Shown here piece after piece: positions 16,270 through 56,412 of a stretch of DNA of 64,000 nt (within the stretch, counting starts at the first letter, position 1; each line of letters starts with the position of its first letter). The stretch is from Macrostomum hystrix (lineage: Eukaryota; Animalia; Platyhelminthes), in the NCBI GenBank assembly GCA_950097015.1, contig CATNEN010000002.1, positions 682,001-746,000 on the forward strand, read 5' to 3'. The notes under the pieces were generated by a model. That model had not been told where the DNA came from. It was given only the letters and a program-made list of their open reading frames with translations, and ran no database searches. The position numbers and the translations under genes are program-made.

Positions 16270-16660
16270 GTCATACTTTGTTTCTGTGATTTTGTGTTTC
16301 TGTGATTCTGTGATTTTTTGATTCTGTGATTCTGTTATTCTGTGATTCTGTGGTTCTGTGATTCTGTGATTCTGTGATTTTTTGATTCTGTGATTCTGCT
16401 ATTCTGTGATTCTGTGGTTCAGTGATTATGTGATTCTGTGATTCTGTGATTCTGTGATTTTGTGGTTCTGTGATTCTGTGATTCTATGACTCTGTGATTT
16501 TTTGATTCTGTGGTTCATCACACCTGTCACTGAGGTCAGCTTCATCACACCTGTCACTGAGGTCAGCTTCATCACACCTGTCACTGAGGTCAGCTTCATC
16601 ACACCTGTCACTGAGGTCAGCTTCATCACACCTGTCACTGAGGTCAGCTTCATCACTCCT
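16270..16660. repeat. 8-bp TTCTGTGA array (about 16270-16515) fused to about 5 units of the same 27-bp unit as at 10914
   Basis: Direct inspection of the unit sequences. Confidence 0.9.
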
Positions 16661-16925
16661 GGGGGTGCCGGGCGAGAGCGGCAGCGGTGACGGGAAACTC
16701 AATGGTCCATGGGGTCTGGCGGTGGTGACGGAAGGTGCGCGCGAGCAGCTGGTGGTGGCTGACGGAGCCAACCGTCGACTGGTGGTGCTGAATGTGGAGT
16801 GAGGCGTCAGTGAGCGCGTTGAAAGCAGCGACTTTGCAGAATTGGGTCGGGCAGTTTTGGTCTCTGTAGTTTTCAAAAATAAAAACGATGTGAGAAGCTA
16901 CAGGCAGGAGACGGCGATGGCGGAA
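16659..16925 (+). pseudogene. Orphan 3' fragment of the NHL-repeat gene family
   Basis: 16659-16802 reads LGVPGESGSGDGKLNGPWGLAVVTEGAREQLVVADGANRRLVVLNVE*, homologous to the C-terminus of 53532..55136. It is followed by a homologous 3' UTR and then a ~40-bp piece (16885-16925, DVRSYRQETAMAE) matching the coiled-coil region of that gene. Confidence 0.85.
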
Positions 16926-43679: not shown

Positions 43680-44585
43680 TGAAACCTACACGACCGAGCT
43701 CGAGTGCCGCCAGTGTGCTGAGTGAGTTCGTGCAGATCCGGACTTGGGAGAGCGCAGCACGTGCCCGGACCGAGAGCACACAGGGCAGGGCCTCAGCTAT
43801 CGCCATGAGCTCCGCGTGGAGGCTGGAGGTCATGCAGCCGGCTTAGCTCGGTATCAGGCTCGACAAGGATGCCGCTGACACCGTCTTGGACGCCATCTTT
43901 TGCGGCCCGTCTGTCCAGATGATCGTTCAGGCCGGTGAAAGCACAGCGAGCGTTTCTTCGCGCCAGCCCCGCGCGCCCTGGAGCCGGCGGCGGGGCACGT
44001 CGCTATTAGCACAGTCGCGCAGTGGGTTTTCTGGAGGCTGCCGGGCGGCGCTCTGGTAGAGTAGACTGGCGTGCATCTCCGCGCGCAGTGTCATCGGCGG
44101 CAGCCCGGCCTCATGCCCCAGGACCGTTCTTTCGTCAACGATCCATATTGTTCCTCCAGCCAGGCAGTCAAGGGCAGCTTCGGTCGGGAGCGGAAGCTGG
44201 CCCAGTCCGCCTTCGCCCAGGCTTGACATGCGGCGCCTGCTCGTTTTGCTACGCAGCGGCTGTAATGAATGGTGAGGAGACTCGTCAGGCGGTCGCAGAC
44301 AAGATCCTCCTTCTTGTGAGTTGTGGCAAATGCAAATTCTGACTTCGGGGCTGTCTGACGCGCACCGGCGCGGCGCGGCATGTGCGCAGACAACTGACCA
44401 CTCGAAGACCGCCGTACCCTTGTCTGTCTCATCCGCATCGGAGTCCCAGGCCGGGTGGTGCGCATTAAAGGCACCCAAAATGATCGCGTTGGCGCCAGAC
44501 GGAAGAAGTTGGGGGTTGAACCGTTGTGGGTGGTCGTCGCCCTCCGCATTTCTGATCGGTGGTACGTAGAGCCAGCTGATCTTCT
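43680..44585 (-). mobile_element. Degraded RNase H-bearing non-LTR retrotransposon remnant (APE endonuclease + RNase H, RT missing)
   Basis: APE-like YVPP...IILGAFNAHHPAWD and WAKADWASF (44200-44585). RNase H-like TIIWTDG (~43900-43925) and AELMAIAEAL...VRICTNSLSTLAAL (~43690-43820). Contains frameshifts and stops. Confidence 0.75.
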
Positions 44586-48639: not shown

Positions 48640-49590
48640 ATCTAACACTTCAGAACTTTTCGTAACACTTCAGAACTCTGTATAACACTTCAGAACCATG
48701 TGTAACACTTCAGAACCATGTGTAACACTTCAGAACCATGTGTAACACTTCAGAACCATGTGTAACACTTCAGAACCATGTGCAACACTTCAGAACTCTG
48801 TGTAACACTTCAGAACTCTGTGTAACACTTCAGAACCATGTGTAACACTTCAGAACCATGTGTAACACTTCAGAACTCTGTGCAACACTTCAGAACTCAG
48901 TGTAGCACTTCAGAACTCTGTGTAACACTTCAGAACTCTGTATAACACTTCAGAACTCTGTGTAACACTTCAGAACTCTGTGCAACACTTCAGAACTCTG
49001 TGCAACACTTCAGAACTCTGTATAACACTTCAGAACTCTGTGCAACACTTCAGAACTCTGTGTAACACTTCAGAACTCTGTGTAACACTTCAGAACTCTG
49101 TGTAACACTTCAGAACTCTGTATAACACTTCAGAACTCTGTGTAACACTTCAGAACTCTGTGTAACACTTCAGAACTCTGTGTAACACTTCAGAACTCTG
49201 TGTAACACTTCAGAACTCTGTGCAACACTTCAGAACTCTGTGCAACACTTCAGAACTCTGTGCAACACTTCAGAACTCTGTATAACACTTCAGAACCATG
49301 TGTAACACTTCAGAACTCTGTGTAGCACTTCAGAACCATGTGTAACAATTCAGAACTCTGTGTAGCACTTCAGAACCATGTGTAACAATTCAGAACTCTG
49401 TGTATCACTTCAGAACCATGTGCAACACTTCAGAACTCTGTGCAACACTTCAGAACCATGTGTAACACTTCAGAACTCTGTGTAACACTTCAGAACCATG
49501 TGTAACACTTCAGAACTCTGTGTAACACTTCAGAACTCTGTGCAACACTTCAGAACTCTGTCTAACACTTCAGAACTCTGTTTAACGCTT
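48640..49590. repeat. 20-bp minisatellite (AACACTTCAGAACTCTGTGT)
   Basis: About 47 units. Confidence 0.95.
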
Positions 49591-49698
49591 CAGAACCCTG
49601 ACTATCAACTTTCGGACAATGTCTAACAGTAAAAAAACGTTTATTTTCGATTCTAGTCAAAAGTCTCGTAGAAGACTTCTCAAATCAACTCCAGCGAC

Positions 49699-50007
49699 AT
49701 GCCGAAATTCTGTCTGCTCCTCCTGGCTCTGCTCGTGGCTTGCGCAGGCGCCGCCGCTGCCAACAGTCGCGAAGGTGTTCAACCTGGCGACTATGTGGAG
49801 TCCATTGTGGAAGGCGAGAAGGTGCACTACAACCTGAACGAGATGGAAGAAGACTGGGACATCGAGGTCGAAATCCTGGAGAAGCTGCTGCAGACCAACG
49901 GTCACATCGACATGCTGCCCAACACCAACCCGATGAGTCTGGTGGAGACCGAGAACGGCCAGATCGAGATGCACCCGTGGGAGACCCCCCTGCCTTCTAG
50001 CAAATAA
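49699..50007 (+). CDS. Small secreted acidic protein, 102 aa, unknown family
   Basis: GC3-rich intact ORF with signal peptide MPKFCLLLLALLVACAGAAAA and an upstream acceptor-like TTCTAG at about 49654. AATAAA overlaps the stop. Confidence 0.75.
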   Translation: MPKFCLLLLALLVACAGAAAANSREGVQPGDYVESIVEGEKVHYNLNEMEEDWDIEVEILEKLLQTNGHIDMLPNTNPMSLVETENGQIEMHPWETPLPSSK

Positions 50008-50486: not shown

Positions 50487-51313
50487 TTATTCCACATTCA
50501 GCACCACCAGTCGCGTGTTGGCAATGTCAGCCACAACCAACTGCTTGCACGCACCTCCCGTCACCACCGCCAGGCCGTATGGATTATAAGGGCTGCCGCG
50601 CTCTCCCGTCACCCTCAGAGTCCACAGCAGCGACCCGTCGTCGGCAGCCACCGCTCGCACTGAGTGACCACTCCACTCACTCACGAACAGGCGGCCTCTC
50701 CTGTCCACGGCCACACCCGCTGGCAAAACAAACTCTTTGAGGCCGCAACGCTCAGTCGGGTGCGAGGCGACCACCTGCTGGGTGTCAATGCGCACTCTGT
50801 GCACCTGATTGTGCTTCCAGTCTGTCACCAGAATACAGTTGTCGTGAATCGCTAGGTTGCCCAGTCCAGCATCAGGAAACTCAGTCAGCGTGATGACCCA
50901 CTCCATCTCGCCAGTCGCTTTGCTGAATGCAACAATTTTGTTGCCACCAGACACAAACACGGAGGCTGCGTTGCCGCCGATTCCCTCAATGCCACGAAAG
51001 CCCTCGATTCGAGGTTTGTGGTTCGATTCGACGCACCTTTCGACCGCTCAGGTCCGTCACTGTCACTGCGTCAACTTGAGCAATGAACAGCAGTTGACGG
51101 TCGCCATGAAGACCCCAGATTGTCTTCTTCCAGCCGATGTCGCAGTGGCACCGCAGCTTCTTCGAGCCGTCCACAGACAGCATCTGAAGGTGATCTTTGC
51201 AATATAATGATGCGAAGATGCATGGCTGAGGCAGAGCCTCACCCCCGCCACTCGCTGACTCGGCAGACACCACACGGCCTGAGCGGTCACCAACGAATTC
51301 GCTGGTGTCGCTG
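50487..51313 (-). pseudogene. 5'-truncated, frameshifted copy of the NHL-repeat gene (copy 3)
   Basis: Homology to 53532..55136 begins at the SDTS codons. A 7-nt insertion at about 51008-51014 shifts the frame. The 3' ORF 50487..50960 is open. Confidence 0.85.
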
Positions 51314-51315
51314 AA

Positions 51316-51724
51316 CTCCTCCTTCCCCCGTCCTCCCCCTTCCTCCACCTTCCTCCTTCCTCCTTCCTTCTCCTTCCTCCTTCCTTCCTCCTCCTTCCTC
51401 CTTCCTTCCTCCTCCTTCCTCCTTACTCCCTCGTCCTTCCTCCTCCTTCCTCCTTCCTCCTCCTTCCTCCTTCCTCCTTCCTCCTTCCTTTCTCCTTCCC
51501 CCTTCCTCCTCCTTCCTCCTTCCTTCCTCTTTCCTCCCTCCTCCTCCTTCCTCCTTCCTCTTTCCTCCCTCCTCCTCCTTCTCCTTCCTCCTTTCTCCTC
51601 TTTCCTTCCTCCTCCTTCCTCCTCCTTCCTCCTTCCTTCTCCTTCCTTCCTCCTCCTTGCTCCTTCCTCCTTCCTCCTCCTTCCTCCTTCCTCCTTCCTC
51701 CTCCTTCCTCCTTCCTCCTTCCTC
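51316..51724. repeat. Polypyrimidine (CCT/CCTT) low-complexity tract
   Basis: About 410 bp, almost entirely C/T, directly abutting the truncation point of NHL copy 3. Confidence 0.92.
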
Positions 51725-51959
51725 CATTGCAAAAAACATTCCAAAAAAGAAATAACAAAAACAAATTATAACAATGGCACGCTATATTGATATATTTTAT
51801 CATTTACATGCCTAATTACCACATACATGTTTTCACATATTTTATCAAATACTACTAATTGTTCCTCTCGTTAAAACTTCAAACGCATAAACAAAAGACC
51901 CTTTTCACCGAACCACTCCTGCAAATTCTCTGCTTCATCTACGCTCACTCACTGACCAC

Positions 51960-52798
51960 TCACTCCATATTCAGCACCACCAGTCGCTTGTTCCCAAAGT
52001 CAGCCACCACCAGCTGCTCGCGGGCGCCTCCCGTCACCACCGCCAGACCGCTTGTATAATTAAATCTGCCGGCACCGCTGCCGCTCTCGCCCGGCACCCC
52101 CAGAGTCCACAGCAGCGACCCGTCGTCTGCAGCCACCGCTCGCACTGAGTCACCCCAATATTCACTCACGAACAGGCGGCCTCTCCTGTCCACGGCCACA
52201 CCCACTGGCCGAGCAAACTCTTTGAGGCCGCAACGCTCAGTCGGGTGCGAGGCGACCACCTGCTGGGTGTCAATGCGCACTCTGTGCACCTGATTGTGCT
52301 TCCAGTCTGTCACCAGAATACAGTTGTCGTGAATCGCTAGGTTGCCCAGTCCAGCATCAGGAAACTCAGTCAGCGTGATGACCGTCTCCATCTCGCCAGT
52401 CGCTTTGCTGAATGCAACAATTTTGTTGCCACCAGACACAAACACGGAGGCTGCGTTGCCGCCGATTCCCTCAATGCCACGAAAGCCCTCGATTCGAGGT
52501 TTGTGGTTCGATTCGACGCACCTTTCGACCGCTCAGGTCCGTCACTGTCACTGCGTCAACTTGAGCAATGAACAGCAGTTGACGGTCGCCATGAAGACCC
52601 CAGATTGTCTTCTTCCAGCCGATGTCGCAGTGGCACCGCAGCTTCTTCGAGCCGTCCACAGACAGCATCTGAAGGTGATCTTTGCAATATAATGATGCGA
52701 AGATGCATGGCTGAGGCAGAGCCTCACCCCCGCCACTCGCTGACTCGGCAGACACCACACGGCCTGAGCGGTCACCAACGAATTCGCTGGTGTCGCTG
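51960..52798 (-). pseudogene. 5'-truncated, frameshifted copy of the NHL-repeat gene (copy 2)
   Basis: Same truncation point and same 7-nt insertion (52493-52499) as copy 3, offset by 1485 bp. The 3' ORF 51960..52445 is open. Confidence 0.85.
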
Positions 52799-52800
52799 AA

Positions 52801-53250
52801 CTCCTCCTTCCCCCGTCCTCCCCCTTCCTCCACCTTCCTCCTTCCTCCTTCCTTCTCCTTCCTCCTTCCTTCCTCCTCCTTCCTCCTTCCTTCCTCCTCC
52901 TTCCTCCTTACTCCCTCGTCCTTCCTTCCTCCTTCCTCCTTTCTCCCCTTCCTTCCTCCTCCTTCCTCCTTCCTCCTTCCTCCTTTCTCCCCTTCCTTCC
53001 TCCTCCTTCCTCCTTCCTCCTTCCTCCTTTCTCCCCTTCCTTCCTCCTCCTTCCTCCTTCCTCCTTCCTCCTTTCTCCCCTTCCTTCCTCCTCCTTCCTC
53101 CTTCCTCCTTCCGCCCTCCTTCCTCCTTCCTTCTCCATCCTCCTTCCTCCTTCCTCCTTCCTCCTCCATCCCCCTTCCTCCTTCCTCCTTCCTTCCTCCT
53201 CCTTCCTTCCTCCTCCTTCCTCCTTCCTTCCTCCTCCTTCCTTCCTTCTC
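52801..53250. repeat. Polypyrimidine (CCT/CCTT) low-complexity tract
   Basis: About 450 bp, abutting the truncation point of NHL copy 2. Confidence 0.92.
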
Positions 53251-53531
53251 TTTCCTAATTCCTATTTCCTCTAAAAGCATTACAAAGAGCAAAAACAAAA
53301 ACAAAAAGAAAAACAAATAGCAAGAAGGATACGCTATATCATATTTTTCAATCATACCTATGCCAAATAAGCACATACATTTATTGACATATTCATTGAA
53401 TATCAAATTAAAGATCGAATGGCTAATCGTTTCTCTGTTTAAAAATTCAGACACATAAACAAAAGAGCCAATTGACCGAACCACTACTGCAAAGTCTCTG
53501 CTTCATCTACGACTGCTTCATCACTGCCGAC

Positions 53532-55136
53532 TCACTCCACATTCAGCACCACTAGTCGACGGCGCCAATAGTCAGCAACAACCAGATGCTCGCGCACGCC
53601 TCCAGTCACCACCGCAAGACCGCATGGACCATTGAGTCCGCCGCCACCGCAGCCGCTCTCGCCCGGCACCCCCAGAGTCCACAGCAGCGACCCGTCGTCT
53701 GCAGCCACCGCTCGCACTGAGTCACCCCAATATTCACTCACGAACAGGCGGCCTCTCCTGTCCACGGCCACACCCACTGGTACAGCAAACCTTTTGAGAC
53801 CGCAACGCTCAGTCGGGTGCGAGGCGACCACCTGCTGGGTGTCAATGCGCACTCTGTGAACCTGATTCTGCTTCCAGTCTGTCACCAGAATGCAGTTGTC
53901 GTGAACCACCAGGTTGCCCAGTGTAGCATCAGGAAACTCAGTCAGCGTGATGACCGTCTCCATCTCGCCAGTCGCTTTGCTGAAGGCAACAATTTTGTTG
54001 CCACCAGACACAAACACGGAGGCTGCGTTGCCGCCGATTCCTCTGATGTCACCGAAGCCCTCGATTTGTGGTTTGATTCGACGCACCTTTCGACCGCTCA
54101 GGTCCGTCACTGTCACTGCGTCAGATTGAGCAATGAACAGCAGCTGACGGTCACAGTGAAGACCCCAGATGTCCCTCTTCCAGTCGATGTCGCAGTGGCA
54201 CCGCAGCTTCTTCGAGCCGTCCACAGACACCACCTGAAGGTGATTCTTGCCATCGACTGATGCGAAGATGCAGGGCTCAGGCAGAGCCTCACCGCCGTCA
54301 CTCGCTGACTCGGCGGCCACCACACGGCCCGAACGGTCACCAACGAATCCGCTGGTGTCGCTGCACACCGCCAGCCACTTAACCAAGCCATCCAGCTTCA
54401 CCTCGTGACTGTACACAATCGGATCGAGCAATGCCTGTCTCGCCATCGCCTTCATTGCGTCGTCAATCTCCTCGGGTGTCGCGCTGACCTCAGCGTCTCT
54501 CCAGCCCTCACCAGTCCACACGTTCACACGAGCCAACGCTCTGCCGAACTGCTCCGACACCTGCCCCAGTCGCTCCAGCTGCTGCTCCGCTCCCAAACTC
54601 TCCTCCAGCGACTTCTGCAGCCGATCAAAGTCCGCCTTCAAGTCATCGAGCGACAACTCCATCGACATCGTCAGCTCGACAAGCTTCGACATCTCGCCTG
54701 CAGCTTCCGCCATCGACGTCTCCTGCCTGTAGCTTCTCACATCGTCCATGTCCCTCTGCCACACACGCGCTGTCTCAATCCGAGCTATCATCGGACCTGT
54801 CAGTCGATCTTCACTCGAATCCTGGTATCTCCGCATCGTCTCATACAGCTGCTTCGCCCGTCGCAACTGCTCCTCCATCTCGTGAATCCAATCTCCTCCA
54901 CCACCTGCTGCACTGCCGCCTGCAGCTTCGGCTTGTGGGAAGGCACGCAGCTTCTCTGCGACCTTCTCCTTCAGCTTGAGGGCATCCGCCACATCAACAC
55001 TCAGGTGTTCCGAGCACAGGTAGCGCTCGGAGAACGGACCCAGGCCGACTGCAGCTTTTTGGCAGACGACGCAGATTGGGATCACTTCAGGAGGTCCTTC
55101 GGAACTCGAGCTGTCGCTGGAGTCTCCACGCTGCAT
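53532..55136 (-). CDS. Intronless B-box-like zinc finger + coiled-coil + NHL-repeat beta-propeller protein (TRIM-NHL-like, no RING), 534 aa
   Basis: CVVC...YLCSEH at the N-terminus, a helical E/L-rich middle, and NHL motifs ILVTDWKQNQVHRV, FAVPVGVAVDRRGRLFVSE and LNGPCGLAV...LVVADY. Acceptor TTTCCAG just upstream of the ATG. Confidence 0.88.
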   Translation of the reverse strand: MQRGDSSDSSSSEGPPEVIPICVVCQKAAVGLGPFSERYLCSEHLSVDVADALKLKEKVAEKLRAFPQAEAAGGSAAGGGGDWIHEMEEQLRRAKQLYETMRRYQDSSEDRLTGPMIARIETARVWQRDMDDVRSYRQETSMAEAAGEMSKLVELTMSMELSLDDLKADFDRLQKSLEESLGAEQQLERLGQVSEQFGRALARVNVWTGEGWRDAEVSATPEEIDDAMKAMARQALLDPIVYSHEVKLDGLVKWLAVCSDTSGFVGDRSGRVVAAESASDGGEALPEPCIFASVDGKNHLQVVSVDGSKKLRCHCDIDWKRDIWGLHCDRQLLFIAQSDAVTVTDLSGRKVRRIKPQIEGFGDIRGIGGNAASVFVSGGNKIVAFSKATGEMETVITLTEFPDATLGNLVVHDNCILVTDWKQNQVHRVRIDTQQVVASHPTERCGLKRFAVPVGVAVDRRGRLFVSEYWGDSVRAVAADDGSLLWTLGVPGESGCGGGGLNGPCGLAVVTGGVREHLVVADYWRRRLVVLNVE

Positions 55137-55904
55137 TTTCAGATTCGAGGTCTGGAAAGAGAGTCGGAAAGAGGCCGTGTGAGTTGAAGACTGCTGCTGG
55201 AATCTGCCAGAACTCTAATATTATCTCAGTGTTAAAAGTTCTCAACTTCAACTCGCTACCACAGAAAGCTGTGAAACAGAAAAGTTGCAGAACTGCCGTA
55301 AGCAGGCCGATGCTGAGGCTCAGGTGAGAATGAGTTTCAATCAGACAGCAGTCGGAAGCTGTGCTCAGGAGTCTGAGATGACTCTTATGTCAGGTATCTC
55401 AGTTAAACTCTGCTCTGTTGCTAAGCAACAGTGAGAAGCCTGAGTCTGGTCGATATAGAGAACAGAATGAAATCCTTGAGTCGCTCTGCTCCGGCAGCTC
55501 AGTTTGTCGGCAAAAGACAGTGAGAGTGAAATCTGTTTTTGTTTATTCTCGGTCGAACGCGAATTCAAAATTCTTTCTGTGGCTGCGTGCATTTCTCTGC
55601 GCCTGGGACAGAGAGGGCCGGCTCTGCGTAGCTGTGAGCACAGCTGAGCACCCACCTCTGCCTCCAACTGCTCACAATGGGAGCGTAGATTGGGCGAGTG
55701 TACTCAAATGCATTGTTTGTGCACTTAGCTGTGCCATCTTGAGCCCAAAGTACGACCCGAGACATTGTGGCTCTGCTTGTCAGACACTTTCTGACAGATC
55801 CGAGCTGTTAGAGAGGCGATCGACCTGTTAGAGTAGGGAAAAACAACAGGCCAGCAGTTCAAGACGTTGGAAAAATCTCATATTTACTTTTTTGTCTGAT
55901 ATTA

Positions 55905-56412
55905 GCCTCATCAGCTCACCTACCATTAGCCTCATCAGCTCACCTACCATTAGCCTCATCAGCTCACATTAGCTTCATGAGCTCAAATTAGCTTCATCAG
56001 CTCACATTATCCTCATCAGCTCACATTATCCTCATCAGCTCACATTATCCTCATGAGCTCACATTAGCTTCATCAGCTCACATTATCCTCATGAGCTCAC
56101 ATTATCCTCATGAGCTCACATTATCCTCATGAGCTCACATTATCCCCATCAGCTCACATTATCCTCATGAGCTCACATTAGCTTCATCAGCTCACATTAT
56201 CCTCATCAGCTCACATTATCCTCATCAGCTCACATTAGCTTCATCAGCTCACATTATCCTCATCAGCTCACATTAGCTTCATGAGCTCACAGTAGCTTCA
56301 TCAGCTCGCATTTTCCTCATGAGCTCACATTATCCTCATCAGCTCACATTAGCTTCATCAGCTCACATTATCCTCATCAGCTCACAGTAGCTTCATGAGC
56401 TCACAGTAGCTT
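55905..56412. repeat. 19-bp minisatellite (CAGCTCACATTATCCTCAT)
   Basis: About 26 units. Confidence 0.92.

Follow-up and report, generated by a model that had tools for sequence, protein, structure and literature searches.

The NHL beta-propellers of Brat and LIN-41 bind RNA through their top face. Fish finTRIM and primate TRIM5alpha are cytoplasmic coiled-coil proteins of expanded lineage-specific families, with positive selection in their C-terminal recognition loops (B30.2/SPRY), and pseudogene-templated gene conversion is known from the chicken immunoglobulin (Ig) pseudo-V genes, from Neisseria pilE/pilS and from the variant surface glycoprotein (VSG) genes of trypanosomes. We know of no hypervariable receptor family of this kind described on an NHL propeller and, to our knowledge, innate recognition in flatworms is poorly known. 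Hypervariable propellers of the WD40 type are found in the fungal NLRs HET-E, HET-D and HNWD (PMC4986451, PMC12222747). Here, an NHL propeller gene with two truncated copies 3' of it was examined in a 64,000 nt stretch of the genome of the flatworm Macrostomum hystrix (GenBank assembly GCA_950097015.1, contig CATNEN010000002.1, here C2; coordinates 682001-746000), referred to below as the window.

The analysis mainly corrects an earlier note on this DNA, in which the truncated copies had been taken for tandem silent 'cassettes'. They are best read as pseudogene debris, and the underlying biology is probably that of an NHL family with a hypervariable predicted top face, an inherited repertoire under diversifying selection that is shuffled by pervasive germline gene conversion.

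The intact gene, its product and its family

The intact gene and its parts are listed below, with coordinates in the window and the strand in brackets.

53532-55136 (-): intact single-exon gene, family member L001, from the list of open reading frames (ORFs), with a 100% self-match in the genome search
54417-55136 (-): N-terminal part, residues 1-240, zinc knuckle followed by long helices (coiled coil)
53535-54416 (-): six-bladed NHL beta-propeller, residues 241-534, predicted local distance difference test (pLDDT) above 90
53775-53792 (-): hypervariable block 1, residues 449-454, loop entering strand A of blade V, 6-7 amino-acid states in 14 paralogues
53721-53732 (-): hypervariable block 2, residues 469-472, B-C loop of blade V, 5 and 9 states
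53622-53651 (-): hypervariable block 3, residues 496-505, loop entering strand A of blade VI, up to 8 states
53559-53570 (-): hypervariable block 4, residues 523-526, B-C loop of blade VI, 7 and 9 states

The locus was found to hold one intact gene and two truncated copies, and the four blocks and an orphan fragment elsewhere in the window read as the earlier note had described them. The intact gene is an uninterrupted ORF of 534 aa, and its coordinates include the stop codon.

A six-frame search of the genome (220 Mb, 42 contigs) returned 82 matches. These include 14 intact full-length close paralogues with 87-93% identity, which map to 0-1 Mb of C2 and 5.0-6.6 Mb of C11, several intact members of lower identity (45-78%) and about six pseudogenes of full length. 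C-terminal fragments number only about five in the whole genome, namely copies 2 and 3, the orphan at 16665-16802, one downstream of family member L007 on C11 and one on C7. Relatives outside the genome were found only among the proteins of M. lignano (54-62% identity), and the paralogues of the two genomes cluster by species. A literature search found nothing that pairs Macrostomum with NHL, ties TRIM-NHL proteins to a lineage-specific expansion or names the M. lignano gene identifiers. The family thus appears to be a Macrostomum-lineage set of about 20 genes, undescribed as far as literature searches reach. Among the paralogues the N-terminal 260 residues are ~97% conserved, and about ten short hypervariable patches lie within an almost invariant propeller framework. 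The four blocks are four of these patches and are variable in every paralogue, not in the truncated copies alone.

An AlphaFold (AF2) model built on 28 family sequences was less confident for the helical N-terminal half than for the propeller. The propeller superposed on the NHL domains of TRIM71, Lin41, Thin and TRIM2/3 with Z scores of 29-31 and a root-mean-square deviation (rmsd) of 2.3-2.9 A over ~250 residues; for the NHL domain of TRIM71, VIA-align gave a Z score of 30.6 and an rmsd of 2.3 A with 251 of 277 residues aligned. The Foldseek template modelling (TM) score of the propeller to an NHL domain was 0.77. At the sequence level, the family profile matched the TRIM71 NHL domain at E 2.6e-23, and Pfam NHL (PF01436) was matched by 25 of the 28 members, the intact protein alone scoring 16.4 bits, below the 20-bit cut-off. 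By both superposition and sequence profile, the propeller has the six-bladed NHL fold.

The zinc knuckle has the form Cys-x2-Cys...Cys-x2-His (C22, C25, C41, H44), and its Cys and His columns are near-invariant in the family alignment. Between it and the propeller, helices are predicted at residues 42-72, 80-146, 149-180 and 183-210 (overall span 42-233; pLDDT 50-85), and these would supply the coiled coil expected of TRIM proteins. No Pfam match to a RING was found in any of the 28 members, and just 21 residues precede the first Cys pair. The 28 members also gave no match to the B-box (PF00643); the conserved C22, C25, C41 and H44 amount to four ligands, and the M. lignano relatives are called 'B box-type' in UniRef. 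The architecture resembles that of Brat, a RING-less TRIM-NHL protein, and membership of the tripartite-motif family is not established. As the N-terminus is hydrophilic and no signal peptide was seen by inspection, the protein is probably cytoplasmic.

The intact protein also carries private changes. At residue 525 (53559-53570), Arg replaces the Asn of the last 'AD-x-x-N-x-R' motif, which is Asn in the other 13 close paralogues, and S496C and Q517H were also found.

Mosaic tracts and the truncated copies

The genome-wide collection of paralogues and the recombination test that the earlier note had called for revealed mosaic tracts across the whole family. A statistic similar to the pairwise homoplasy index (PHI) was 0.305, compared with 0.358 +/- 0.013 for shuffled site order (0 of 2000 permutations; 111 informative sites), and the four-gamete test was failed by 36% of site pairs, the conserved N-terminal half included. 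The closest paralogue of any copy switches about every 60 nt. In a GENECONV-like scan, 77 of 120 pairs had a significant tract (0.05), 11 of them at 0 of 2000 permutations, and the tracts were 60-130 nt long. The segmental gene conversion among copies that had been proposed is therefore statistically clear. The significant tracts also join intact genes, e.g. L001 with L005 and L004 with L011, and the pseudogenes show no excess of them; mosaicism is a property of the whole family.

The truncated copies and the features associated with them are as follows.

53423-53511 (-): conserved 3' flank of the intact gene
52801-53271 (-): (GGA)n polypurine microsatellite on the gene strand, between the 3' flank of the intact gene and copy 2 (Tandem Repeats Finder, TRF)
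51960-52799 (-): copy 2, 5'-truncated pseudogene fragment, residue ~258 to stop, from alignment with the intact gene
51317-51725 (-): second (GGA)n microsatellite, between copy 2 and copy 3 (TRF)
50487-51314 (-): copy 3, 5'-truncated pseudogene fragment with the same junction as copy 2, from alignment with the intact gene
53652-53781 (-): tract of the intact gene identical to copy 2 (52080-52209), gene-conversion tract
16665-16802 (+): orphan fragment of the last blade, 45 codons, adjoining a 27-nt minisatellite
C11:5964430-5964834 (-): fragment downstream of L007 (L007:481-885)

In gene orientation, the intact gene is followed by its 3' flank, (GGA)n, copy 2 with its flank, (GGA)n and copy 3. 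Copies 2 and 3 align with the last ~840 nt of the intact gene and start at exactly one common junction with the microsatellite, at residue ~258. Both contain the same 7-nt insertion (52494-52500 in copy 2; 51009-51015 in copy 3), which shifts the frame onto an early stop (52471-52473 and 50986-50988, respectively). Because insertion and stop are common to both, the two copies are regarded as frameshifted pseudogene fragments.

Between copies 2 and 3, identity is 99.7% for the first 600 aligned columns and falls to 85.8% for the last 266; a stretch of 415 nt is exactly identical in both. The 3' end of copy 3 has diverged and includes a 12-nt deletion in block 3. Copy 2 had been described as a mosaic, and this was borne out by the split in its identity to copy 3 and by the 129-nt run (52080-52209) that is identical to the intact gene (53652-53781) at an overall divergence of 10% (P = 5e-5 for random placement of the differences). 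Another of the significant tracts, of 125 nt, is common to copy 3 and L005 on C11. For the diverged 3' ends of the two copies, no exact donor was found in the assembly, the best matches being 93% and 86%.

In the first 600 columns, identity of the copies to the intact gene next to them is 92%, compared with a family mean of 91%. A recent partial duplication of the adjacent gene was therefore ruled out, and as the copies are no closer to it than to other paralogues, they descend from a separate family member. Two further origins were rejected. Alternative 3' exons would be entered in a frame that reaches the 7-nt insertion and the stop after ~105 codons, and in place of a polypyrimidine tract the gene strand has a polypurine repeat upstream of them. 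Retrocopies, suggested by the 5' truncation, do not fit with the retention of the genomic 3' flank and microsatellite or with the lack of a poly(A) tail.

The same order of gene, (GGA)n and fragment was found at L007 on C11, where the fragment covers residues ~397-531 with 67% identity and the breakpoint is at residue ~397. The orphan begins at residue ~490, directly at the 27-nt minisatellite (16514-16661; 5.5 copies, 99% matches), which is itself preceded by an array of an 8-nt repeat. With each of the three breakpoints (~258, ~397 and ~490) at a tandem repeat, the truncations look like repeated accidents at unstable DNA.

The earlier note had assigned the truncated copies the role of donors. 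In such a dedicated system, silent truncated copies would be kept as donors for directed conversion, germline or somatic, that alters the binding face of the expressed gene. It would account for the 129-nt tract, which includes a variable block and is exactly the same in copy 2 as in the intact gene, for silent copies that cover the variable propeller part only, and for the second locus at L007. However, this explanation is very unlikely, as the few fragments compare with at least 14 intact genes and the full-length pseudogenes, no fragment is found downstream of 12 of the 14 close intact genes, tracts between intact genes are equally significant, and the unlike breakpoints fit accidents. Within one genome, the tract between the intact gene and copy 2 is compatible with either direction, transfer from the intact gene to copy 2 requiring one event and the reverse requiring two. 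A few expression sites fed by many silent donors, the arrangement that a cassette system predicts, was not what the genome contained. The donor role is therefore not supported: the two copies are frameshifted remnants of a separate member that take part in exchange, nothing shows them as donors, and they are best read as by-products and not as a mechanism.

Under the preferred reading of an inherited repertoire, the repertoire would be carried by the intact genes, at least 14 in number and each with its own combination of loop blocks, and would evolve by gene birth and death together with diversifying selection on the loops. Frequent short germline conversions of 60-130 nt would reshuffle the blocks between paralogues, including those on other contigs. 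In the simplest history, the truncated copies would have arisen where two neighbouring family units stood side by side. A deletion from the microsatellite of the first unit into the second gene would have removed the 5' half of the latter, and the remaining fragment would then have gained the frameshift. Duplication of the unit of microsatellite plus fragment, or homogenisation of its 5' 600 nt, would have followed, with the 3' ends exchanged with paralogues (the adjacent gene in the case of copy 2, L005 in that of copy 3).

The (GGA)n array, which is 0.4 to >1.2 kb long, begins at a fixed distance of ~230 nt past the stop codon in 10 of the 14 close paralogues and so belongs to the gene unit. 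At two independent loci, truncated copies have their junction with it. The paralogues that lack it, L011-L014, form a well-resolved clade, and those with the array form an unresolved star. At the one M. lignano locus examined, (GGA)n was not found and a 38-nt minisatellite was present instead. Polypurine sequences of this class can form triplex DNA and provoke breaks. The array and the nearby fragments might then act as a built-in promoter of recombination that speeds the swapping of binding-face blocks, perhaps also in stem cells (neoblasts) of the soma or germline. This is improbable, though if true a recombination-promoting (GGA)n would make the family a system of diversification in flatworms with an NHL propeller as its scaffold.

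Selection at the hypervariable sites and features around the locus

Rates of nonsynonymous (dN) and synonymous (dS) substitution were compared among the 14 close intact genes. For the 27 propeller codons with at least 4 amino-acid states, dN was 0.82 and dS 0.41, and for 240 framework codons dN was 0.03 and dS 0.096. Codons with at least 5 states numbered 22, against 1.5-3.7 expected from a neutral simulation at framework dS, and those with at least 7 states numbered 9, against 0.01 expected. As a check on circularity, 24 sites were chosen on M. lignano paralogues alone and then measured in the present genome, where dN/dS was 1.55 (bootstrap 1.02-2.34) and dN was 7.6 times the framework dS. 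The variable positions coincide in the two species (entropy 1.69 vs 0.29 bits, Mann-Whitney P = 3e-16).

The sites were placed from the strand topology of the model (DSSP strands) and not from three-dimensional coordinates. The hypervariable residues of blades II-VI recur periodically at two positions, the first comprising two non-adjacent residues just ahead of the glycine that opens strand A (the D-to-A connection) and the second comprising the first two residues past strand B (the B-C loop). The A-B and C-D loops of the opposite face are invariant. As NHL propellers have their C-terminus on the bottom face (PMC9634614) and the last strand here is a C strand, the B-C and D-A loops should be on top, and ~25 hypervariable residues are predicted to lie on this putative ligand-binding face. 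The amino-acid excess is confined to the predicted binding loops, as expected of a germline recognition family.

Diversity at the hypervariable sites is, on these rates, favoured, whether it consists of new change or of old blocks that were kept. The loop dN/dS is 1.5-2, above 1 also at the independently chosen sites, and with the neutral expectation exceeded, the idea of a diversified recognition protein in the earlier note looks sound. By inference, the protein may recognise a ligand, dimerise through the coiled coil and have a role in immunity or against selfish elements.

The alternative that the blocks are unconstrained surface loops and the mosaic is due to recurrent mutation, with no selection for diversity, is highly improbable. 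Loops do tolerate change, and the private framework changes (47 nonsynonymous vs 26 synonymous) hint at relaxed constraint overall. However, neutral drift is at odds with the excess of many-state codons, with the dN/dS at the sites picked in M. lignano and with the invariance of the loops on the opposite face, and under frequent conversion the loops would become uniform if diversity were not favoured.

Several findings weigh against an inherited repertoire shuffled by conversion and under selection at the binding face. As dS is also raised at the hypervariable codons (0.41), part of the loop diversity probably consists of old blocks that were kept while the frameworks were homogenised. The location of the variable blocks at the ligand face, claimed in the earlier note, held for the loops before strand A and after strand B, which are on top by topology; it did not extend to the three-dimensional geometry, to the patch at residues 294-299, which has indels and no certain placement in an irregular region by an extra hairpin, or to residue 413, which lies in an A-B loop. 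Private framework substitutions, used as a test of decay, gave small counts that were similar in pseudogenes and intact genes and thus do not set the two apart, suggesting that the copies are young or recently converted. The labels 'working' and 'dead' were themselves assigned on reading frames alone.

Least probable of all is an artefact of assembly or haplotype in which the tandem copies around the long microsatellite are spurious, as, although an exactly identical stretch of 415 nt in two units beside simple repeats is a known source of misassembly, the units differ by 14% over the last 266 columns, in microsatellite length and in the 3' flank, both are truncated and frameshifted so that neither is an allele of the intact gene, and a similar arrangement is present on another contig.

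Highly regular minisatellites lie on both sides of the locus (49000-49600 and 55901-56411), with units of 20 nt and 19/24 nt. A 102-codon ORF directly downstream of copy 3 begins with a hydrophobic stretch similar to a signal peptide, and may be a gene for a small secreted protein. Divergent matches (43-45%) to the N-terminal coiled-coil part only were found on the opposite strand ~1-1.5 kb upstream of four family genes, and may represent a recurrent head-to-head neighbour gene.

49699-50007 (+): ORF of 102 codons, possible small secreted protein
C2:17324-17686, 43972-44370, 947727-948038 and 954557-954868 (+): divergent N-terminal-only matches

Comparison with known systems

Expanded receptor families with a hypervariable face usually mark an arms race between host and parasite or between self and non-self. 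The coincidence of variable loop positions in two Macrostomum species points to long-standing selection on the surface that binds RNA in Brat and LIN-41, and the family could therefore be an intracellular sensor of variable RNAs or proteins, e.g. those of viruses or transposons. As M. lignano is a transgenic model amenable to RNA interference (RNAi), the function of the family is open to testing there.

Known TRIM-NHL proteins (Brat, LIN-41/TRIM71, TRIM2/3, Thin/TRIM32 and Mei-P26) share with the present family a C-terminal six-bladed NHL propeller that follows a coiled coil (Z ~30, rmsd 2.3-2.9 A), and Brat, like the family, has no RING. However, the family has only a four-ligand zinc knuckle, with neither a RING nor a recognisable B-box, and identity is ~20%. 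Known members are also single-copy conserved developmental regulators, whereas the present family has ~20 genes and a hypervariable top face.

The finTRIM and TRIM5alpha proteins differ in having a SPRY and not an NHL fold, in the presence of a RING and a B-box, and in an antiviral role that has been shown for them. The pseudo-V, pilS and VSG systems are similar to the present locus in that silent partial copies of a variable region lie beside an intact gene with a conversion tract in common, but differ in that the present locus has no large silent array, the family has many intact genes of the expressed type, and conversion could have run in either direction.

In the fungal WD40 NLRs, repeats are shuffled within and between genes and the propeller is joined to a NACHT/HET effector module, whereas in the present family whole-gene paralogues swap tracts of 60-130 nt, one blade is not near-identical to another and a coiled coil forms the N-terminus. 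In both, however, a propeller carries a few periodic hypervariable positions per blade on its binding face, these positions are under positive selection, and the units are reshuffled by recombination or concerted evolution.

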